Below are positions 16,800 to 46,724 of a stretch of DNA of 64,000 bases, piece by piece. The notes under the pieces are model-generated. The model saw only the letters and a list, made by a program, of their open reading frames with translations. It ran no database searches and was not told the DNA's origin. The stretch spans positions 151,785 to 215,784 of the forward strand of contig MCFH01000078.1 of NCBI GenBank assembly GCA_002104945.1. The letters run 5' to 3'. Within the stretch, counting starts at the first letter, position 1, and each line of letters opens with the position of its first letter. The position numbers were made by a program, and so were the translations under genes. Origin of the DNA: Piromyces finnis finn. Its lineage: Eukaryota > Fungi > Neocallimastigomycota.

Positions 16800-18205
16800 T
16801 AGATGTTTCACATATCTATTCTGTAATAGTCGTAGCACCACTATCAGGACAGGAATTTGTAAGAACCTCATTTGTAGAACCATCACTATATACATTATAA
16901 ACATAATTATTACGATTAAATTTAAATGGTAGCATTTAAAACTACTGAGTTTTCATCAACTTTAACCATTACAATGGAGTTATCACTAGTAGTGCCGTAG
17001 AAATAATTGTTAGCCCCAACATTTAAAAGATAAACCTTGGCTGGAGATTGAAGTACAGGAATATACATCATCATTATTATTTATAGAATAAACATTTTTT
17101 CTACTTTAGAACATTCAATTTCATCGGATATTGATGATTTACAATAGAATAATAACCTTTTATACCTTTATCTCCAATATTACTTTGAGTGAGATGGTTT
17201 TTATTAACAAGGTAGTAGTTTTTGTTATCTCAACTCAAACCTGATTCTACACGACATCCTTTATTTTCTATTATTTTAATTAAATGTAAATTTGATAAGA
17301 TTAAAATAAGATAATAAAATAAAAATGGTTAATCCATATAAATTTTTAAATATAAAATACACTATAATTATTATTCTTTGTTTTTTTTTTTTTTTTTTAA
17401 AAAAAATTCTATTTAAATAGGGTTAAATATTTAATCTCTATTACTTATACTATAAGATTCCAGAATCAAAACCAAAAGTACCTCTATTATAACCATTAGT
17501 ACTTTTCTTTAATGATATATTTTTATTATTTTCTTTTATACTCTGAATTTTTGTATATTTTGGCATGTTCATATATTACTATATAAAGTCGTCATATATA
17601 CAATATTTTCCTAAATCAAGAGCAATGAATTCTGAAATATTACAAGAATTATTTATTTGTACAAGAAGTCGTAATCTCTGTAGAAATACAAGTTGCACTA
17701 AAAACAATATAGTTATCAGAGTTTATAAAAACATAATTTATTGTTGTTGCTAAACTATTAATTTCAATAGAACTTGAATCAACACTTTCTCTATACAATT
17801 TATAATCCTTTGTAAAATCACCATATTTAGTACAAGATGGTTCTGATGTAATGAATGCGTTTATTTTTACCTTTTCCAATTAAATAAGTTTCATTATTTA
17901 AAATTTTAATATAACCATAAGTTTGTTTATATTGATTTTCGACACAATTTCTTAATGCATATTTTATTATATCTGATACATTTTGATCTGATACATTCAT
18001 AGTTTGAGCTATAGCATTTCTATTGAATTTAGTTAAATTAATTCTATTTGGTAATACAATGTTTTAGTAGTTATAAATAATTTTGTATTTTCGTTCAAGG
18101 CAATAATCTTATTACCCTTTATACAATAACCATTAGCAATTTGACTAACATTATAAGAAGATAAACCGATATTAACATTACCAATAGTACATTCATTAAT
18201 TATTA
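16800..18205 (-). pseudogene. Frameshifted, stop-containing copy of scaffoldin-type repeat exons
   Basis: From an AG acceptor at 18206 it reads VIINECTIG..QIANGYCIKGNKIIAL, then (frameshift ~18060) NVSDQNVSDIIKYALRNC..KQTYGYIK, then (frameshift ~17880) SCTKYGDFTKDYKL..IEINS. This parallels exon 33560-32997. Further degenerate pieces at 16800-17270 contain in-frame stops and shifts. Confidence 0.8.
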
Positions 18206-20643: not shown

Positions 20644-23600
20644 TTAAACCAATATAAAGAAAAGGAATATTATATTTAATGTAAAAAGTGTAGTAGTGAG
20701 GAGGGATGGATAAAGATAATGGAAAGAGGCAGCACTAATATTACATTTCTCCGGATTTTCTTCGCTCTCTTCACATTCAGCATAACCCATTTTTTCAATT
20801 GAACAAATTTTTAAATCTTTAGTTTCATGATCTAACTGAACGAAATTGTTAATACAAACTAAATTAAAATCGGCTTTCTTTTCCTCGGCATTATAGGTAC
20901 AATTTGTATAAACGCCAACTACTGAATCAAGGAAATGACGGCGTTGAAGAACAGCAGTTGAATTGTTATTATTAATAATGGCAGAAAGTGCACTTTGAAT
21001 TTCTTCAGGATATTCTTTTGTTAAAGCTACTGGGAAGTTTACAACAACCTTCTTGTTGAAATAACAATGACGAGCCATAACGTGAGTAAGTCGACCGTTA
21101 GATTCACAGTAGTAATATTGATTTTCAATGAAATAATATTGACCATGGGCACAATAATAACGACTACATTCTGTAGGTTCTAATTCTTCTGAATCATATA
21201 TACAATTATATATTTCTCCAGTTTGGGTTAAGATATATTCTGAATTCGTTATTAATTTACATTCTTCACCTGTCATTTCTTTTTTCTTTTGGCAATGATA
21301 CATTTCTTCATCTATGGTATAGTAATATCCAAGAGCTGCTTTTTTTCCCAAGGTAAAGGTGATAATATTATCAGAACTCTTTTCAATTTTATAAATATAT
21401 TTGGCGTCAGGAGAGGTAGATATTAAAGCATACCCCGAATTTTCAGGAATCTTCCACTCATTATTATTATAACGAAGTAAAAGTTTGGCTTCTTCATCAT
21501 AATAATAGCTATCATTCTCAGGTTCATACACCTTACAAATTGATTTTTCACAACCGTATATTAAAATATTGTCTATTTTCTTTCTGAAATATTGAATAGT
21601 ACTATTTGTATAACGACTTATTAAGTGATATCCGGTAGTTTCAATTCTTTCGGCCTTATTAATACTCATAGAGTATAAATATTTACCATATCCATAAATA
21701 TTTTTTGTGATGCTTGTTGCCTTAAAACATTCTCCGGTTTCATGATTTTTGATATCTTTACGAACCACTGCTAATTCCCCCTTATATGTAATACAGAATT
21801 CGCGATCATTCATATCGGCATTTGGTGTACATTTATTATTTTTAAAAATACAAATGATGTCCTTATCGTATGCAAATTTATAACCATTATAATCTGTATT
21901 GTAGACAAATATACGTTTATTGGCATCAGTAAAATAAGTTTGAGTAGTGGGTGTATCCAAAATATGACAACTACTACCATTACAACTGTATAATTTTACA
22001 TTTTCATCATTATAAGAAGTAATCTCTTTATCCTTTACAATAATATTCTTTTTGGTGTTAATAAAGTAGTTACCAGCTTCAACAAATTGGAGAACACTAC
22101 CTTTATCCAAGAGATATATATTAGATCCCACTGCGAAATAATTATCGGAATAATCATCTGTTACTTCCACACAATTAGTGATTGTCGTGGTACTTTTGTA
22201 GGTGGCAATTTTACTATCAATAACATTAGGTTTCACTACCACGTTATCAGTGGCGAAATAGAAAACAGAACGTGTTTCATCGGTGCAAATATTACCAGCT
22301 TCTAAATTGGTAGTTGCTGATTTTTTAATAGCATATGCTTGAGTGATATAACATTTTCTATTATCATATTCGCATATTGGAATAGCATCAATTTCAGCAG
22401 TGGTAAGAGCATTACATTTACCTAAAACACAACGAATAATACCATAAGATTCATTACTATCTCTGGATGAAATTTTAATTTTTTCATTATGTGGTGTTTG
22501 TAATTCTTCATTTTTTTGGAATTCATTATTATTATCAGTAATATTATCTATTGATAATTCTTTATTGACATGACTAGAATTACTTTTTAGATTGTAGAAC
22601 TCTTTTTCTACTTCATTTTCACGCTTTTTGTTTGAATCTGATATGTTTCGGAGAGCACTTCGGAAAATACCATTGGTAATACTAATGTATTTACATTTAC
22701 CATTATCTTTACAACTAATTAAAACACTTGGATTGTTGGAAATATAGAAACCAGTATTTGATTCTTCTATATCGCAATTTATTGTATTACCATTTTCTGT
22801 ACAATTAATTAAACCATTTGAATTTTCACTAGAATCAGCATTATTATAATAATTAACTGAAGGAATAATCTCTACACATAAACTACTGGATGTACATTGA
22901 ATTAAGCGTTCCTTATTATATGTTAAATAATATCCTACCTTTCCTTTTACTTCTTTACATCCTTTTTGTTTGGAACATTCAATAAGTGGATAAAAGTCCC
23001 TATTTTCACCAGCATTTACATATATGATCTTTTTTTGTGAACTAATTTCAGTAAAACTACAACTGTTTTGACCATTGCAATAAATTATTCCTGCACCATC
23101 ATGAGCTAAATAGAAACCTGTCGTCACTGTTTTTGTAGCACAAACATTATTGGAGCATTGTATTAAACTGTTCTTGTCTGAATCATAACCATTATTTTCA
23201 TAGTATGAAGTTACTTTAGATTGTTCAACTCTACATTTTGTACCTTTATTTTCACATTTTATTAAGGAGGCATGCTTCGATCTACCAGCTAAATTACTGG
23301 TTATGACATATCCAGTAACATCAGCTTGTGAAAGGTGCTTATTCTCGTTACAGAAAAGTGCCTCTTTATTTTCAGAATTATATAAGTAGGTATAAGGAGT
23401 ACATTCTGGTCGTATTATACATTCCATGTTAGTAGAATCACAATCGTATACTGTTGCATTCTCTTCATTTTTATCTGTTTCTTTCACTAATTTCCCATTT
23501 TTATCAATAACCACAACACCACTTTGATAGAAACGATTAATGGTATATTGTGTAATTTTAAATAGAATTAACATATCCTTTGTAATTCCTGGGAAGTTAC

Positions 23601-26600
23601 CGGCTAGAATGAATGAATAGGTATAGTAATTCTCTGTATTAGTAGTATATATTGCTGTAGAATTCTTTTGAGGATAGAATAATAATTTATTTTCTTTGTA
23701 ACAGTAATTACCACCAACAGCGTCCTCATCCTTCTTTGGACAATTGCCTTTTTCTGCAATACATATGCCATTGACAGTACCACACTTTATCACAGGATTT
23801 TCTGGATCACCAGCATTAACATAGTAACCAATATCAACTTTGCGAGTTTCACATCCAGTTTCTTCATTACAAATAATAGTTTGGTTGATTGCTTGATTGT
23901 AACCAGAGTTAAGATAATAACCTTGGGAGGTGAAATCTCGTTTTAATAAGCATGCTGAAGTATTACATACAATTAAGCCATATAGTTCATCTTCATTCTT
24001 ACCCAAATAATATGTTGGTCCCTTAGAAGGAGTTATTTTTTCACAAAAATGATTTGAACAGGATATAACAGCATTTACAAGACTATCAGTTTTTTCAGCA
24101 TTTACGTAATATTCGACAACTGTAGATGGCAGGTCAATACGAATAATTTTGCAACCGTCAATGTTAGTACATTGAATTAATTGATGGTTATCTTTTGCAT
24201 AATTGGAATTAAGATAATATCCAATCACATTTCTATATAATTCTGTACAAGTGATTGCTGTGGTAGTTTCATTTTCCTTACTAGAACATTCAATTATACT
24301 ATTTTTATTTAAATCGCCGGCGTTTATATAGTATTCATTACTATTCAAAGTAGGTGATGAAATAGAAACTTGACAACCATTATTTTTACTACATTTAATT
24401 AATGGATAATCCTTTTTATTACTACCATAATTTACATAAACATCCTTAGCTTGAGCATTTTGTATATTACAGGTTACTGTATTAGATGAGTAGGAACATT
24501 GAATTAAAGTATCATTTAAATGATTAGGAAGATAGTTACCAGAATTAACAAAAAACTGTGATAACTTTGAGTCAGTCACGGTGATAGTGGAAAGAATGCA
24601 ACCCTTTTCTTTATCACAAATAATTAATGGAAGTGGCGTGTTATTTTCTAGATCAACAGAACTGTTCAGGTAAACATCACCATCGTGACCATTAATAATA
24701 TCACAAATTATTTTTGCTTGTACACTTTTACAACGAATAAGGTTATTTACCAATGGATCATCCTTATTATTTATGGAATCATAGTTAACAAAATATGCAA
24801 AACCTTTAATATCTTTACTTAATGATAAAATTTCACAAGGTTTACCCTCACGGCATTGAATTAAATCACCTATATCAGAAGAATTAATATAGATACCATT
24901 ATCTTGCCCATCACCAAGTTCACATTTTATCATTTTTCCATTATTACTACATATAATTAAATCCTTAATATGTTCAATTTCATGTGGATTTTTAGTAAGA
25001 TCACTAGCATTTAAATAAATTTCATTTCTGGTGGTTAATGCAAAACTATTTCTAGCTTTACATCCATTTTGTTCGGTACAATAAATGATTTGAGAATTAT
25101 TGAAAGCATTAATATAAACATCATTATTAACGGTTGGATATATTTCACATTTATCACTACATTGAATAATAGTATCTTTAAGAAGAACAGACTCGGTATG
25201 CCCAGCATTAACATAATAAATATAATTATTAATATCTGATGTCACTGATACTTCCTTACAGCTCTCTCCTTTTTGACACAAAATAATGGGTTTATTATTT
25301 TTTGTAGCTTCGTAGGCTGCGTTCAAGTAAACATCGTCGTTTTGTGCAGATTCTACTTTACAATCAATAATAGAATTGTTATTGGTACATTTAATTAAAT
25401 CGTCTTTTAATATTTTATCATTGGTTTCATCACTATTAACAAAGTATTGTGGTTTACTAATAATGGCTGTACTAATAGTTAATTCACAAATACCATTTAA
25501 ACATCTAATTAAATGGTTTTGAGTATCAGCAGTGGATAAATAATTAGCATTTAGATAGATATGACAACCTGTTTTAAATTCATTTTTTATAATTACGCAT
25601 TGATTAGCTTTAGAACATTTGATGAGACTCATATTAGTAGTGTCACCACCATTGATATAATACTCAGAAAAAGTATCAGTTGGATTTGTAGCAGCAGCAA
25701 GACAACCTTCTTGTTTTGTACATCTAATAATTTGAGTAGCATTTGCAGCATTTAAATAAATTTGTTTATCAGAAGCTTTAGTCGTGTCTTGAGATGTTGT
25801 ACAAATTGCAGTTTTGTTCGATTTGATTTCGCATTGTATTAAAGAATCAGCAAGTTTTTCTGTTTTTCCACCATTAATATAATATTCATTTTTACCTTCA
25901 ATACTATTATTATTTGAATATGCATGACAGCCATTATCTTTTGAACAACGAATAAGATAATTTATTTTATCGTAATTTATTGTATCGTAGTTTTTATTTA
26001 AAAAGAAGGTTTCATGAACTTTGATTCCATCAATTATATTGGAAATATCTTTTGTAACACATGAAACAGTTGAAGGATTTGAGCACTCAATTAAAGTATT
26101 TACAAGAGATTTAGAGTCATAAGCACCAGCATTAACATAATATTCAAAAGAATTAGATGAAACTGTATTCGCAGTTGAAAGACATTTTCCTTCAGCACAT
26201 ATAATTAATTGGTTATTGTCAGTGCTTTTCTCATTAGTAGTAGTTTTCAAATTGGCATTCAAATAGACATCATTAGCATGTCCATCAACTTCTTTGCATG
26301 TTTCTTCACACTTGATTAAGAGTTTAATATATGTATTAGTATTATCTGACTTTAGACTTATGGTATCTCTTTCATTGTTGGTGGATGTATTTGCTGTTTC
26401 CGCATTAATATAGAAAATTGGATTATGACTACTACCAATACCACCATAGGAAGTACATTTTGTATCATAACAATGAATCAATGCTTTATTGTAACTATTA
26501 ATATATATATTATTAACAGCAGCTGTAGTAACAAATTCAACATTAGCTCTTAAGGTAACAGAATTCTTTTCCTTTCCAGATTGAGGTGAAGAGACAGAAT

Positions 26601-29600
26601 CAGTGAATGAAACTTTAATAATAGCGTCTGTAAGATCAGTCGAATCACCATGAACATAATGCTCAATAATATTTTTATTTGGATTCTTATTACTATAAGG
26701 AACACATCCATTAGCAGAACATTTTATAAGATAATTAATATTGTCATGGTTATTATAGTTTTTATTAATATAGAAAATTTCTTTATCATCATTATTAATT
26801 TTTTCGGTAATATCTTCAACTGTACACTGGGAGGTGTTGCAATATATCATTCCTTCAACTAATTTATTTTCATCACTTGCTCCAGCATTATTATAATATT
26901 CTTTTGTACTTGAACTTTTACCATTAATGGTTGTACATATTCCATCATAGCATCCAATAAGGTAATTATTATCCACAGGTTGATTACCATTTAAATATAC
27001 GTAATTTTCACCGCTTGATTCGATTGTACAAGCTCCTCCAGATGATAAACATTTTATTAAAAGATTTTTATAAGGTTCTGTAATGGTAGCACCACCATTA
27101 ACATAATATACATTGCTTTCCTTCCTTTCTTTTATACTGGTGTCAATATCACTTGTATTGCATTTATATTCACTACAAATAATTAAACGGTTTGTTGTGT
27201 CCCCATAATTATTAGTAGTTACGGATGAATCTATATAATTTGAATTTATAAAAACATCATAGTCCTTAATTTCTGTTCCATATTCAACGCAATTACCGCT
27301 TCCTGAGCATTTAATTAAAAGACCTTTATAACTCACATTTTCACTTTCATTATTTCCAGAACCATTAATGAAAAATGCTGATACATTTGAATTTCCTAAA
27401 GGACCATTAAATGCTTCACATGTATTACTTCCATAGCATCGTATCAAATTGCCATTATAACTGTTAATATAAATATCATTTTCTTTTGGTGTGTTGAATA
27501 ATGTACACTTACTAAAAGTATCATCATCAATACTTACATTATTATTTGCGTCAATTGATTTAATTTTACAAGAAATAATTGATGCACTAAAGTTAGATTC
27601 TAATGGTGCTCCATGAACATAATATTCAATTGTATTTTCAATAGCATTAGTATTTGAATAAGTATTACAAGTATTAGAAGAAGAACAATGAATAAGATAG
27701 TTCATGTCCTTATCTGTACCTTTACCATAGTTAGCATTAATGTAAAATACATCTTGTGACGTACTTGCTCCAACTGTTACAGTTTCAGCAACACATGATA
27801 TTTTTGATATTTCTGAATTATACTTACATAAAATTAATGGATACGATTCATTACTACTATTTTCAGTATAGATATTAGAATTAACATAATATTCATTATC
27901 GTTAGCTGTAGCTGAACTTTTCTGTATCTCACATTTACTATTATTACATATAATTAAATGATTTGTACTATCAGTTGGACCAGTGTTTTCTGAAGAGTTA
28001 CTATTGAAATTACCATTAAGATATATATAATTAAGACCGCCGTCTGTAGGAGTGCAAGCCCCACTATTTCTACATTGAATTAAAAGATTAGAGTAAGTTT
28101 CAGATGTTGTAGTCGATCCATTAATAAAATATTTATTTCCAGTATTTTCTTCAACAGAAATATTTTTTGCTTTACATTCATTATCTGCACAAATAATTAA
28201 ACGATTTTCAGCATCGCCACTTAAAGAATTTTCTTTATAATTAGCATTAATAAACACATCATTGTCTTTAATTAAATCATTATTATCATCTGTATTATAT
28301 AAGTAGCAATCATTTTTAGAATCACATTTAATTAAACAGCCTTTATAACTAGATTTTGAAGTATCAGTACCTGCATTGATATAGAATCCTGGTATATCAT
28401 CCGTTCCATTACCTTTAATGGATTTACAAGCATTATTGTAACATTGGATAATATTTTTATTATTAAAACTATTAAGATAAATATCACCTTCAGATGGATT
28501 TATTAATTCTACATTAATATTACTTTTTTCACTCCTTTTTTCCGAGGTGGTATCCTTAATTGTTACTTTGATAACTGCTTTTTGTAAACTACCATTATTG
28601 GGAGCACCATGAATATACCATTCTGTGCCGGTTTTTAAAGAAGTACTAGCATATGGAACGCAACCATTATCAATATTACCAACTTTACTACATTTGATTA
28701 AATAATTAGTAGCGTCTAATTCATCAGTTAATCCATAGTTTTCATTTTTAAAAAATACTTCTGTAATTTTATTTCCATCAACTACAGTAATGAGATTTTT
28801 TGTTTGACAACCATATGAATTACATTCAATTAGTGAATCTTCTAATTTTATAGAAGTACCAGCATTAACATAATATTTATTCTCATTTTCACTTTCTTTT
28901 GGTGATTGAATAATATTACATGTGATGGATGGAGATGTTCCAGTACATTTTAATAAAGTACTTGGAGTTTTAGCACCAGTAGTTATAACTCCAGCAGTTT
29001 CATTTAATAAAAAATATCCATATGTAGGTACACAATTTTCTTTTGAACAAGTATAAACGGCAAGTTCTTGAGATTCAGATACTTCAGACGCTTCAACTAA
29101 TATATTACCTGATTCAATTTGAATAAGTGATAAAATTTTTTCATTGGTTTCCAATTCTAAGTTTTCATTCTCTGATGTATATTTGTATAATTTAAGTTTG
29201 CCTTCAGTTTCTATGACATAATACTTTTCATTCTCGCTTACTATATATTTGGTATAAATATTTTATTATTTTAAAAATAAGTTTTCAAATTAATATTTTA
29301 TATGATAGAATTAATTTAACAATTAAAATAATAATATTCATAATTTATAATATATTAATAAAATTAAATAATCTTATAAATATTGATATAAATATTTCAT
29401 TTATATTTTATTTGTGAATGTTACTATTTTCTTTAAAAAACAAATTGAATCAATTATAATAAATTGTGTTTTGTATATATATTATATTATATTAAATTTT
29501 AATATATAAATTTTATAATACCTTTAAGATTTTCAAAATAGAATACATTTGAAGCTGCTCTAATAAAAATTGATGCTTCTAATGAGATCTCAGTAAACTT

Positions 29601-32600
29601 ATTATTAGCTGGTGCTGTTATAATGTAATTCTTTGCATTGTTTTCATAATTAAGATTTAAAGTATTATTATTAGAATCAATACATAAATTAAATGATGAA
29701 GTAAGAATATCACCAAATGCACTACATGATGATTTAGGGATAATAGCTCTACTTTCAGATTTTCCAATTAAATATGAATTTTCCCTATCTTTAACGTAAC
29801 CATATGTTTGTTTACATTTCTTATCATCACAATTAATTAAAGCATATTTTTTAATGTCATTTTCATTAATGCTTTCATCTTTTATAAGTGAAACTTCATT
29901 AATACTACCATCGAACTTAATTAAATGAATTCCAGCTGTTAAATCTGATTCTGTTATTGATACTGGTGTATTGTTATTATTTAATGAAATAATTTTTTTT
30001 CCTGTTATGCAATAGCTATTGCTTTCTAGATTAGAATTATAACTTTCATTATTTTTTATTTCATCACTACATTCATTGACGGTAACTATATATATATATT
30101 TGAATTAAAATATGTATAATATTTCATAAAAACGTACAATCTTAATATTCTTTATAATATTATTATAATATTGTATTTATAATTTAATTATATTTATTTT
30201 ACATATAATAATAAGGTTTTCTAAATTAGAAAATAGTTACCTGGAGGTATATAAGCAGAACAAATACCAGTTTTTTTACAAATATATCTTTTACTGTCTA
30301 AGGAACACATTGAAGACATAATTGAAACTTCTAAACTTGAATTCATTGTACAATATTCGTTAGCACTCTCTAATGTTTTCAAAACTATGGAATCATTTTT
30401 AACATCAATTAATCCGTATTCATTATTTTGGATTTCAGAAAAGATACTCTTTTCATTATAACTAATTAAATATAAACCAGGAGTTCCTATAGCACTCGTT
30501 GTTATTGTTGGGTTTGCATTATCAAGACAAAGTTTTCCATCATTAATTATCTTACCAATAATACATGAAGATTCTCCTGTAACTAATTTACAACCTTTAT
30601 CATTATTTGCTGAACATTCGATGAATTTATTCGTTTCTGTATCTGCTGCATTTATATAATATCCAGTAGCTGATACCTTTTCTTTTTCACATTCAGATAT
30701 AGTACATTTTATTAAAATACCGGAAGTAGTATTATCGCTAATTAATTCATTATTATTTTCGTTTAATAATATATAACCTTCATATGGAGTACATATACCT
30801 GATGATTGTTTACATTTACTAATAATTGTTTTTTTATCTGTGAATCCTTCCACTTTCTTCAATATACTACCTGAATCTATTGAATCAAATTTCAAAATTT
30901 GATCAATACTACTTTGTAAAGAAAGAGATTTTGTATCAGCATTAAATTCATATAATTTAAAAACATCATCAATTATTATAATATATAACCCGTTATTTTT
31001 ATTAACTTTTGATTTTATTTTTTTTTTTTTAATTTTATAATATAATTATAGTATGGTGTAATATATGTATATATATATAGTTATTTTATTTTAAAATATA
31101 TATAAATTGAGAGTAAATAATATATATGATTAAATAAAAATTCACTACATTTAAATATAAAGTAATAAATCGAGTGCGATAATAATTTATACATACCTTT
31201 TAGACTTTCAAAATATATAATATTTGACACTAATCTAATAAGAATTGATGTTTCCGATGAAATTCCAGTAAATTCATTGTGAGCTGATGCTGCAATAATA
31301 TAATTATTTGTATTATTTCCAGAGTTAAATTCTAAAGCATTATCACCATTATTGTTTATACATAATTTGAATGAAGTAATAATATCACCAAATGTTTCAC
31401 ATGATGATTTAGGAGTAATAGCTCTGCTTTCTGACTTTCCAATTAAATATGTAGTTGCTCTATCTTTAACATAACCAAATGTTTGTTCGCATCTTTCATC
31501 ATCACAATTAATTAGAGCATATTTTTTGATATTGGCGGAATCAATAGTTATAGTTGATATAGATGAAATTTCAGAAATATTTTTCCCTTCAAATTTAAGT
31601 AAATGAATTCCAGATGATAGATTTAACTCTGTTATAAATTGTGCAGTTGAATCTACCTTTGCAATAATTTCTTTATCCTTAATACAATATCCATCAATAT
31701 TGTCTATATTATACTCATTTACATGTATACTTGTATTTTCGTTTCCAGCACATTTAGGTATGGATACTATATAACATTAATTATATAAAATATTAATGTT
31801 TGTCATTTTATAAAAGTAAGTTTAAATAAATACTTAATTATATATATTTACCTCCTTTTTGATTTATATTATTATAAAATTAATTTATTTGAAGTTTTAA
31901 ATTTATTATTATTTATTATAATATAGTAAATAGTATTTATTTTAAATAAATATATATTTAAATTATGATAATTTTTAATAATTAATTTTTTTTACTTAAT
32001 ATAAATATTTACCTGAAGATAACTCACAAATACCTGTCGTTTTACAGGTATATCGTGTGCTATCTTCTGAACATGCAGAGGATATAGGCAAGGTTATTAA
32101 ACTTGAATTTATTACACAATAATCACTATCAATATTTAATATTTTAAGTGTTATAGAATTATCCATAACTTCAACTAATTCAAACATATTTTTACTACCA
32201 GTAGTAAAGATGCTAGCTTCACGATATTTCACTATATAATTACCATTATTATTAGTTTTTATATTGTTATCAAGACAAAGTTTTCCATCTGTAGTAATTT
32301 CACCAATAGTTGAACTGTCACATGAAGTTTCTCCTACAACCAATTTACAATTACTTGCCGTATATTTAATGAATTTATTAGTTTCTGTATCAGCAGCATT
32401 TAAATAATAACCAATAGCTGGTGATTGAACATCTTCACATACTATAGATTGATCATTTCTACAACTTACTAATGTACCAGCAGTATTAGTATCGTTAATA
32501 ATAACACCAGTACTCGAATCTAATAAGAAATATCCAATTATTTGATGACATATACTAGCATCACATTGATAAATAGCAAATCCAGTTTTTATTGAAGCTT

Positions 32601-35600
32601 CTACTAAAATATCATTTGATTCAATTGAATTAAATGATAATATTTTTTTCGTAGTTTCTAATGTTACTGTTTTATCATTTGATGAATATTTGTATAATTT
32701 TAAATTATTTTCTGTATTTAAAATATAAAATTTTTCATTTTCATTAACTACATAAAAAAAATAATTATTTTAATATAATTTATTAGTATTGTATATTAAA
32801 TGTATAAAAATAAGTGATATCTTTTATTAGTTTAACATTTTAGTTTTATCAAAAAAAAATTTATTATATGAATAATATATTATCTTAATATTTAAATTCT
32901 TAATTTTTAATAAATTATTATATTATTGATAGAATTAAATAATTTCATTTCAATTAATAACAATTTCTTTTGAATAATAATAAAAATTAGACTTACCATT
33001 AATGTTATCTAAATAAATAATATTAGAAACTGATCTTATAAAAATAGCACCATTTGTTTTTGTAAATTCATTTTCATTTTCAACATTAATAACATAATTT
33101 GTTGTTGTTGTTGAACTATTAATTTCAATGGGACTTGAATCAATGTTGTCTCTACATAATTTATAATCAGTTGTAATATCTCCATATTTAGTACAAGAAG
33201 ATTCTGTTGTAATTAATGTATTCTTTTTACTTTTTCCAATTAAATAAACATTATCATTAAAAACTTTAATATAACCATATGTTTGTTTACATTGACTTTC
33301 ATTACAATTCATTAATGCATATCTTGTTATATCTGATACATTTTCATTTGATACATTTGTAACTGGCGTAACGTTATTTCCGTCAAATTTTATTAAATTA
33401 ATTCCTTTCGTAAATACTTCACTAATTATAAATAATTCCGTTTTATCCTTCAATGCAATTATTTTATTATCTTTTATACAATAATTATTAGCAATTTGAT
33501 CACCGTTATATTTAGAAAAATCAATATTAATACTGCTATTAGTGCATTGATCAATTGTCACTTTAAATCAAAAAATATAAATAAAATGATTAATATCATT
33601 ATTTTTAAAAATTAAAATAAATATTATAATTATATAGTTATAAATATTTTTACCTCCTTTTTGGTTTTACATTTATAATAATATATAATAAAAAATATTT
33701 TTTTACGTATAACAAAAATTTAATTAATTCTTTTGAAATTTATAAAAAAGTATCTCATTGTTTAATAGTTGGTATTTACCTAAAGATAATTCACAAATAC
33801 CTGTTGTTTTACAGGTATATCTTGTAGTTCCTTCGGTACATATAGAAGACGTAGATAAAGCCGACAAATTTGAATTATTTAAACAATAGTCTTCATCATA
33901 ATCTAATATTAAATAATTTAGTTTTAAAAGCATTATTTAATAAAAATAATAACAATTTTTAATAATTTATTTTTTAAATATTTATTTTTATTATTATAAA
34001 AAGACTATTACCATTAAAATTATCTAAATAAAATATATTATTAGCTGATTTTATCAATATATTGCCTGAAGAATTTGTAAATTCATTTACATTCGAAACA
34101 TTAATAATATAGTTTGTCTCTGAAGTTGAACTGTTAAGTATTAAAGGACTTGTATCACCACTATTTTTACATAAACTATAATTACTGGTAAGAATATCTC
34201 CTGATTCAGAACATAATGATTTAGTAGTAATTATATCACTCTTACTTTTTCCAAATAAATAAATAGAATTATTGTATTCTTTAATATAACCGTGAGTTTG
34301 TTTACATTTGTTTTCATCGCAATTTATTAATGCGAATTTTGTTATGTTGCTATCATTTACATAATGGATTGATTCATTTTTAGACTTTAAATATATTGTC
34401 TTTCCATCAAAGAAATATAATAGTATTCCTGGGTTCAATTTTACTCTTTCCACTATAGTATTATTACTATATATATAAATTAAATTTTTATAAAAACAAT
34501 AACTATAACTATCAGTATTGAAATTGCTGTTTTGATTAGCGTTTAATATTGAATCATTACAAGGGTCAATGTTTACTATTAAATTTTAATAAAATATAAT
34601 ATATATATATATAAACGGCAATTTAAATTTTATAATGATAACGATATTTTTAAATAATTATACATAAATAAATATATAAAGAAATATATAATTTAATTGT
34701 TAAATAAATGAATAAAATAAAATAAATATATCTTTATCATTATATTTACCTCCTTTTAAATGAAAATATTTATATAAATTTTATTTTTTATTAAAATTAA
34801 TATTAGTTAAGGAAATATTACTTTTTAAATTTAAAAATAGTAATTACCAATAATTACCTATAGGTGGTGAAAAAACATTACATATACCGGTTGTTTTGCA
34901 AGAATATCTTGTACTACCTTCAGTACATGCGCGATTTAGAAATCTAGTTGAAGCTACTAAATTTGAATTTTCAACACAATAATCACCTTCTTTATCTAAT
35001 GTTTTAAATGTTATTGAATTTGATTCAACTTTTATTAATATATAATCAGCTTTAAATATACTTTCGTTTCCATTTTTAATTAAGTATTCTCCGCTTCCAC
35101 TAGTTTTTACATTTTCGTTAAGACAAATTGACCCATCATTAACAATTTTACCAATAGTTGAACTATTACATGAAGATTCTCCTGTAACTAACTTACAATC
35201 ATTACTTGCACTACACTCAATGAATCTTTCAGTTTCAGTATTATTATAGTAGCCTATAGCAGGAGACTGAACATTAGTACATTTAAAAGACGGTGACATG
35301 CCAGTACATTCAATTAAAGTACCAGAATTAGTATTGTCAGAAATAAAACTACCAGAAGATGAATCTAATAAGTGATATCCATTATTATTAATACATACAC
35401 CAGAAGAGGTATCACAATTGTAAATATTAAATTCAGAATCTTCATTTGAAATTTTTACTATAATATTATTCATATTCATGCTACTGTAACTCGATTCAAT
35501 GTTTTCAAGTAAAATAGAATTCAATGTAACACTAAGTAAACCATATCCTCCTTCTTCTCCTATATTCTCTGATATAGTTTTTTCTTTATATTTAATTAAA

Positions 35601-37189
35601 TATTTAACCTCTATAACTCCAAATGTTTGAGATAACCTATCATTAAAAAGACAAACAGTCCCATTTGTAGTAATCATACCAATACTCTCATCATTACATG
35701 ATGAAATTTCGGTTCTTATTATATTGCAATTATTATTACTTAGACATTGAATATACTGATTTTTTGATAAAACACTACTTTTGAAATAACCAATTTTTGA
35801 AGTAATAGGATTATATATATTATTAATATAATAATTTAATGTTCCTGTACCATCAGTTGAAAGTACTGCATTTTTTTCACCTAATAAATAATATCCCTCT
35901 TCATGTATTAAGTTATTATTTTTTTAATAATCATAAATAAAAAATTATTATAATAATAGTAATAATAATAATATTGATTAGTTGAAAATAGTGAAAAGAA
36001 TTAAGTTATCATTAATATCACTCTGAAAAAAAAGAAGCATACCAGAACCATCATCTAAATCAAAAGAAGAATTATTAACTAAATTTTTTTCATATAATTC
36101 TCTGTCTGAACTTGGTGTATATTTTTCTTCTTCAATTTGAGGATATTTCACTAGGTCTATATTACCAAAAGCGGAATAAACCATATAATGATGTTCATCC
36201 ATAACATGTTTTGTACCAGATAGAAAATAATTAAGGTTTTCTTTATCATTTATTGGGTCATCCCATGTTACATCAAGAATATACCATTTACCATTATCCA
36301 TTTTAACAAGATTCCATTCATGGTCTATACTTCTTGCAATAATACAATCAATATTATAATGATGTGCTATATATTGAATAGCTTCTGCATAACCTTCACA
36401 AACACATATATTTTCAACAATACTACCATATATATTTCTAATATGAATTCTATTTTCATCCAATACATATTCTATATTTTCTACTAAATAATCATGGATA
36501 TATCTTAAAATACCATATTTTGTTGTTATTTCCTTTTGGTCTATTTGCTTTATGATTCTTTCTTTAACACTCACTATTTCTTTATTCATAACTGCAATAC
36601 TTTCACTTGTATAGCCACTAAATTTATCATTAGGTGGGTGTAAATTTAGTTTAAATGTAATACTTGTTTCATTATAAGAATAACTACCACTGAATGAACT
36701 AATCCACCAAATTCCTGGATTTTCATAAATTAATGCTGTATATACTTTTTCTAAGGAATATAGGGGTGTATTTATGAATTGAATTACTTCATCAATTCCA
36801 TTAAAATTGTTGAGAGTTATTTTAAAATCAAAATCAGGTAGTTCTTTAACTGAACCATTATATAATACCTTATAAATTTCTTTTTCTCTATCATTAAGTT
36901 GATTATAGAAATTAGTAAAATTCTCTATAAGACTATTAGAACTAATAAAAACATTATCCTCCATCATTTCTAGTAATTTGAGTTTTTCATCATCAGTCCA
37001 ATATTTAATCGGGATATTATTATATAAAGTTGAATTTCCTTCAGTATGTTCATCAAAATAATCATTTTGAATATTATTTATTTTTTTGAATACTGTTGTA
37101 TTAAAATATTGTGCCAATGATAATTCTATTAATTCAAATAAAATTAAACCAATTTGCAGCAAACGAAATCTAAAAATAATAGTCTTCAT
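20644..37189 (-). CDS. Giant (~4,845 aa) secreted, C-terminally anchored scaffoldin-like Cys-rich repeat protein with an N-terminal transglutaminase-like domain
   Basis: Hand-spliced minus-strand exons 37189-36043, 35880-34858, [34752-34750], 34452-34012, 33902-33780, [33656-33654], 33560-32997, 32747-32013, [31854-31852], 31766-31197, 31005-30241, 30085-29522, 29240-20644. All introns are GT-AG phase 1 and the exons sum to 14,538 nt = 4,846 codons. Signal peptide MKTIIFRFRLLQIGLILFELIELSLAQ; dozens of (Y/F)(Y/L)INA..LI.C....C repeats as in anaerobic-fungal scaffoldins; hydrophobic C-terminus SAASFHYLYPSLLTTTLFTLNIIFLFFILV. Confidence 0.85.
31852..31854 (-). other. 3-nt micro-exon candidate GAG no.3
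   Basis: Minus strand tcaaaaAG-gag-GTaaata, between exons ending 32013 and starting 31766. Confidence 0.65.
33654..33656 (-). other. 3-nt micro-exon candidate GAG no.2
   Basis: Minus strand ccaaaaAG-gag-GTaaaaa, between exons ending 33780 and starting 33560. Confidence 0.65.
34750..34752 (-). other. 3-nt micro-exon candidate GAG (or recursive AG|GT site) no.1
   Basis: Minus strand tttaaaAG-gag-GTaaata, between exons ending 34858 and starting 34452. Confidence 0.65.
36043..37189 (-). other. Exon 1 of the giant gene: signal peptide + transglutaminase-like (papain-fold Cys-His-Asp) domain
   Basis: LRYIHDYLVENIEY..NIYGSIVENICVCEGYAEA (Cys264) ..DHEWNLV (His290) ..KWYILDVTWDD (Asp306) is the typical bacterial transglutaminase-like core with an intact triad. 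Confidence 0.88.

Positions 37190-39580: not shown

Positions 39581-46724
<7,144 letters not shown>

Follow-up and report, generated by a model that had tools for sequence, protein, structure and literature searches.

In a stretch of 64,000 nucleotides (nt) from the gut fungus Piromyces finnis (assembly GCA_002104945.1, contig MCFH01000078.1, positions 151,785 to 215,784; hereafter, the window), positions 20644-37189 of the minus strand likely hold a single gene for a giant scaffoldin of ~4866 amino acids (aa), secreted and anchored at its C terminus, with an N-terminal TglA-like transglutaminase-fold module that carries a Cys-His-Asp triad. The region corresponds to the public gene model ORX41823.1 (A0A1Y1UUY3; here also P0001), deposited as "scaffoldin [Piromyces finnis]" with a length of 4925 aa. 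In an exhaustive protein search, this model was 100% identical over residues 1-384 to the 403-aa open reading frame (ORF) at 35978-37189 (-), which is followed on the ORF track by several Cys-rich ORFs, up to one of 2836 aa (20644-29154). The gene is divided as follows.

36043..37189, minus strand: exon 1, ending in phase 1 and encoding a signal peptide (~residues 1-26) and the domain with the TglA-like transglutaminase fold, in which the triad is Cys264-His290-Asp306.
35881..36042, minus strand: intron 1, 162 nt, GTATGC...TTAG, 16% GC, phase 1.
29522..35880, minus strand: exons 2-10, encoding alternating Cys-rich A modules (~245-255 aa) and B modules (~188 aa).
20644..29240, minus strand: exon 11, 8.6 kb, encoding ScaA-type repeats, the ~640-aa C-terminal domain conserved in scaffoldins, and, at the very end, a hydrophobic tail.
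17649..18203, minus strand: last two exons of the public model, a decayed B-module fragment that is probably outside the gene.

An earlier note on this DNA had joined the 403-aa ORF to the downstream Cys-rich ORFs by splicing. The window does contain the donor (TCTG/GTATGC, 36042) and the acceptor (TTAG/, 35881), which connect the two frames in phase 1, and the public model uses the same intron. When ORX41823.1 was mapped onto the window, intron 1 at 36042..35881 was followed by nine further introns, the last exon boundary being at 29240. All 10 introns down to this position are GT-AG, phase 1, 51 to 282 nt long, and 7 to 16% GC, in window DNA of 14 to 35% GC. The gene model of the note thus matches a public one; the product is ~4866 aa, against the ~4,845 aa of the note, if the public junctions are used and translation runs to the natural stop at 20644. 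From the acceptor onward, the exon-2 frame encodes scaffoldin-like sequence ("...GYFKSSVLSKNQYIQCLSNNNC..."). This frame is open from 35923, and its first Met, at 35677, lies 68 codons past the acceptor and is preceded by 82 open codons; a start at this Met would lack a signal peptide. By a rough estimate, one stop per ~10 codons is expected at this AT richness, so that an open stretch of 82 codons is unlikely by chance. Because the exon-2 frame has neither a start nor a signal peptide of its own, the scaffoldin body needs an upstream signal-peptide exon, for which exon 1 is the sole candidate. We infer that the 36043/35880 junction is very probably spliced in P. finnis.

The body has the features by which scaffoldins are recognized: it is large, predicted to be secreted, built of a repeated Cys-rich motif, and completed by a conserved C-terminal region and a hydrophobic anchor. 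The borders of the A and B modules (29522-35880) coincide with phase-1 introns, and all six of exons 6-11 start with Val, a pattern suggesting that the A/B array grew as symmetric exons were duplicated. YY(I/V)N...LIxC repeats fill the 2836-aa exon; Pfam has no model for the scaffoldin repeats. A 661-residue C-terminal query from P0257, a related gut-fungal protein, matched the window gene at 47% identity, as well as ~20 other loci in the P. finnis genome (56.46 Mb, 232 contigs). The hydrophobic tail ahead of the stop at 20644 is predicted to be a glycosylphosphatidylinositol (GPI)-signal-like sequence or a membrane anchor. ORX41823.1 loses this tail, since it exits the 8.6-kb exon 33 codons before the natural stop and skips 20644-20746. 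The 2539-nt intron that the model crosses there is ~10 times the size of any other in the gene, and its terminal fragment at 17649-17879 is a decayed B module in which one Cys is replaced by Tyr. The 3′ end of the public model is probably wrong. The natural stop at 20644 is favored as the true end because of the end-to-end homology to P0257, whose last ~1000 residues align with those of the window gene through the final hydrophobic tail.

The same arrangement was found in other gut fungi. Two metagenomic genomic contigs (L097 and L101) carry transglutaminase ORFs (P0165 and P0006) followed by a 98- or 96-nt GT-AG phase-1 intron and then by a further ORF with no initial Met, 1639 aa long in one case and at least 2315 aa in the other. 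When spliced, they read "...SYLSLT(T/S)-x-(L/I)PNCG..." and run colinear with model P0011 of Pecoramyces. In the scaffoldin annotated in Anaeromyces robustus (P0260, 2403 aa, locus L103), a phase-1 intron of 245 nt lies two residues ahead of the same IPNC motif. In the window gene, the phase-1 intron 1 is located 34 residues past a conserved YPxI motif, compared with 33 to 35 residues in the other loci. Two further proteins, P0257 (2410 aa, contig L014) and P0020 (1425 aa, present in two samples), contain the transglutaminase domain and a Cys-rich body in a single open frame, on contigs with short flanks only, consistent with mRNA. With this layout at L097, L101, and L103 and its uninterrupted counterpart in P0257 and P0020, the fusion proposed in the earlier note is very probably real. 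A possible homology between the A/B modules and the post-transglutaminase regions of P0020, P0011, and P0257 came down to a short FAL.DC...C.QTYGY motif (hhalign probability, 42%) and was not used as evidence. Separately, the first "intron" of the A. robustus model (L103, 1897-2226), located in the transglutaminase region, starts with coding-like, Asn/Asp/Glu-rich low-complexity sequence (~160 nt read), and that model may need revision at this point.

The exon-1 domain, which has two subdomains and a complete triad, belongs to the transglutaminase/papain-fold superfamily as a TglA-like member. Transglut_core (Pfam PF01841) matched the 403-aa ORF weakly (18.2 bits, E = 0.003; gathering cutoff, 23), and close homologs score above this cutoff. 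The identity of the domain is secured by these homologs, by a match of the family profile to Streptococcus pyogenes TglA (PDB 9crn, E = 6e-41), and by its fold. The AlphaFold2 (AF2) model of the head (predicted local distance difference test [pLDDT], 89.3; predicted template modeling score [pTM], 0.84) has TglA as its best structural match (Z = 23.9; root mean square deviation, 2.8 Å over 237 residues), followed by transglutaminase 4xz7 (Z = 11.0) and LapG cysteine proteases (Z of ~9). In total, 14,753 library proteins matched the head-domain ORF at an E value of ≤0.001. A signal-peptide-like helix precedes the domain at the N terminus of the exon-1 product. Cys264, His290, and Asp306, reported as intact in the earlier note, are present, and each is kept in at least 90% of the sequences in an 85-sequence family alignment. 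The triad is intact in 5/6 fused or fusion-type proteins (the window gene, P0011, P0020, P0165, and P0006). In a P. finnis paralog at L012 (G000:C156, 2123-3835), the catalytic Cys is replaced by Gly (ECVGEGYAEA), and the family therefore includes likely inactive members.

Several points weigh against a single gene with an enzymatic head. The 36043/35880 junction rests on sequence rather than on transcript reads, and unspliced exon 1 would be a complete 403-aa protein of a size typical of standalone paralogs. A search of Joint Genome Institute (JGI) metagenome contigs with the exact exon-2 DNA pattern and the exon-2 protein returned zero relatives. The sequence that follows the junction in the window gene lacks homology to the corresponding region of the other fused genes. 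A free tree places the transglutaminase exon of the window gene among standalone forms and the other fused genes in a separate, weakly supported clade. In the fused relative P0257, Ser replaces the nucleophilic Cys, which means that not every member of the fused group would be catalytic. Finally, no paper on the function of TglA (PDB 9CRN) was found in the literature. An approximately unbiased (AU) test, run on a smaller sequence set under LG+G4, did not reject the uniting of the fused genes (p = 0.54), and the tree is compatible with a single fusion or with repeated ones.

The first two of these points could also be read to mean that exon 1 is a standalone 403-aa secreted protein ending at 35978, that the body is a separate or 5′-truncated gene, and that the public fusion is a prediction artifact. 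Most of the ~14 transglutaminase-like paralogs of P. finnis are indeed standalone proteins of 425 to 460 aa, in which a signal peptide and the domain are followed, often after a Thr-rich linker, by a hydrophobic C-terminal tail, and ORX41823.1 is demonstrably doubtful at its 3′ end. We nevertheless consider two genes improbable, given that the downstream frame lacks both a start and a signal peptide and its acceptor lies just 98 nt past the stop of the transglutaminase ORF, that the 20-residue tail with which the ORF closes at 35978 if intron 1 is retained makes a poor GPI or hydrophobic signal, and that three further fungal loci show the exon-intron-giant-ORF layout and uninterrupted ORFs contain the fusion as well. 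An exact look-up of the unspliced 403-aa product found no record. That retention and splicing of intron 1 switch between a free 403-aa enzyme and a scaffold-tethered form is also unlikely: retention leads to an in-frame stop after 20 codons and to a product like the standalone paralogs, and the "standalone" metagenome proteins P0006 and P0165 are exon 1 read into the intron, which indicates a frame that tolerates read-through, but short read-through tails before a stop are expected by chance at this AT richness.

The preferred single-gene model can be compared with several known systems. Fungal cellulosome scaffoldins of the ScaA family, reportedly the subject of a 2017 study by Haitjema et al. 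(Nat Microbiol 2:17087), have been described as noncatalytic. The window gene shares with them its giant size, signal peptide, Cys-rich repeats, conserved C-terminal domain, and hydrophobic anchor, and its depositors named it "scaffoldin." It differs from them in its N-terminal enzyme-fold module with a triad and in the intron-rich A/B array ahead of the ScaA-type exon. As modeled, with an intact triad in an enzyme-fold domain, the protein would depart from the description of scaffoldins as noncatalytic. The bacterial single-domain protein S. pyogenes TglA is the best match in both sequence and structure, over both subdomains, although at ~20% identity. LapG/BTLCP cysteine proteases (4FGO and 4U65) have the same core fold and Cys-His-Asp chemistry, but the match is confined to ~130 residues of the core at 12 to 16% identity. 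LapG cleaves a giant repeat-rich surface adhesin and thereby releases it; the protease is periplasmic, calcium dependent, and separate from its substrate. LapG thus offers a functional analogy for possible self-processing or release. Published binding of the fungal dockerin (NCDD) was obtained with a different ScaA fragment, and ScaA could not be localized (PMC8262932).

The predicted targets of the membrane-distal head are amide bonds in proteins at the surface of the cellulosome or cell wall. No activity is known for any member of the family, and the following assignments are predictions. The head may well be a cysteine hydrolase, whether protease, isopeptidase, or amidase, by which proteins of the surface or the cellulosome are trimmed or released. 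A true cross-linking transglutaminase is a less likely candidate and ranks second; a noncatalytic binding module, rated similarly low, ranks third. To name the locking of dockerins, cross-linking, or proteolysis as the specific activity of the head would be speculation. The broadest proposal, that there is a lineage-spanning subclass of scaffoldins with an active Cys-His-Asp enzyme at the distal tip, covalently remodeling the cellulosome or its substrate, whether by cross-linking or by cleavage of docked enzymes, of wall proteins, or of the scaffoldin itself, is put forward tentatively and is doubtful as a whole. Scaffoldins are seen as passive, noncatalytic platforms, and an enzyme-fold head present in at least three genera is a concrete candidate for the covalent assembly, trimming, or release of cellulosomes and would bear on how fungal cellulosomes assemble, attach, and turn over.

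The nearest nonfungal relatives of the domain are from gut Clostridia (Oscillospiraceae, Ruminococcus, Acutalibacteraceae, and Lachnospiraceae), with 26 to 32% identity over ~250 to 290 residues. Because of these neighbors, a bacterial origin by horizontal transfer from gut Clostridia is plausible from sequence comparison, the tree being unrooted; the earlier note had judged the domain Firmicute-like and suggested such a transfer followed by exon capture. An intron architecture that is phase 1 throughout, including the domain boundary, fits exon shuffling or exon capture. The domain family may thus have come to gut fungi from gut Clostridia, then spread there as GPI-type surface proteins, and been fused to a scaffoldin by way of a phase-1 intron; if so, gut fungi acquired yet another module from their bacterial neighbors. 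The literature search covered surveys of horizontal gene transfer, in which the transglutaminase-like domain was not mentioned. A second small fungal group (P0233, which is P. finnis BCR36DRAFT_587798, and P0201 of Piromyces sp. strain E2) groups with the presumed-bacterial P0037 at 100% support in the Shimodaira-Hasegawa-like approximate likelihood ratio test (SH-aLRT), off the main fungal clade, and hints at more than one acquisition of the domain by fungi.

Many of the clostridial relatives are proteins of ~490 aa with a type I dockerin (Dockerin_1). Ten transglutaminase-like proteins with a dockerin are known from Ruminococcus flavefaciens FD-1; a single tandem operon encodes four of them, which are upregulated 3- to 4-fold on cellulose (PMC2930009). 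These ruminococcal and clostridial proteins resemble the fungal module in having a transglutaminase-like domain that is homologous over its full length (26 to 32% identity) and in being secreted and cellulosome associated. In contrast to the fungal module, which is part of the scaffoldin polypeptide, they are joined noncovalently through the dockerin. No fungal dockerin (CBM10) was found on the six gut-fungal transglutaminase paralogs scanned. The head is homologous to uncharacterized dockerin-borne Ruminococcus proteins, in which a dockerin recruits the same module to ruminococcal cellulosomes; if the head is an active enzyme that remodels cellulosomes, transglutaminase-like chemistry would be a conserved, overlooked cellulosome function in two kingdoms. 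In P. finnis, four tandem paralogs (L003-L006; G000:C90:322356-329396) have frames of 411 to 465 aa, each with a signal peptide, at a spacing of ~2 kb, a layout that recalls the R. flavefaciens array. The two read as full ORFs (L003 and L005) have a hydrophobic tail at the C terminus.

The earlier note knew of no description of this architecture, a statement that calls for qualification. Fused models are already public in P. finnis (ORX41823.1) and A. robustus (P0260), where they are named scaffoldin, and discussion of the domain in the literature was not found. No paper linking scaffoldin, the transglutaminase-like domain, and Neocallimastigomycota was retrieved by a search that did not cover the founding paper, Haitjema et al. 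2017. The present analysis adds to the public record a probable correction of the 3′ end of ORX41823.1, to the stop at 20644.

Elsewhere in the window, two long ORFs of 775 and 675 aa lie at 40516-45556 on the minus strand. They are rich in Lys/Glu repeats (EEELKKQ), are not related to the scaffoldin, and account for the strong strand skew at 40 to 46 kb.

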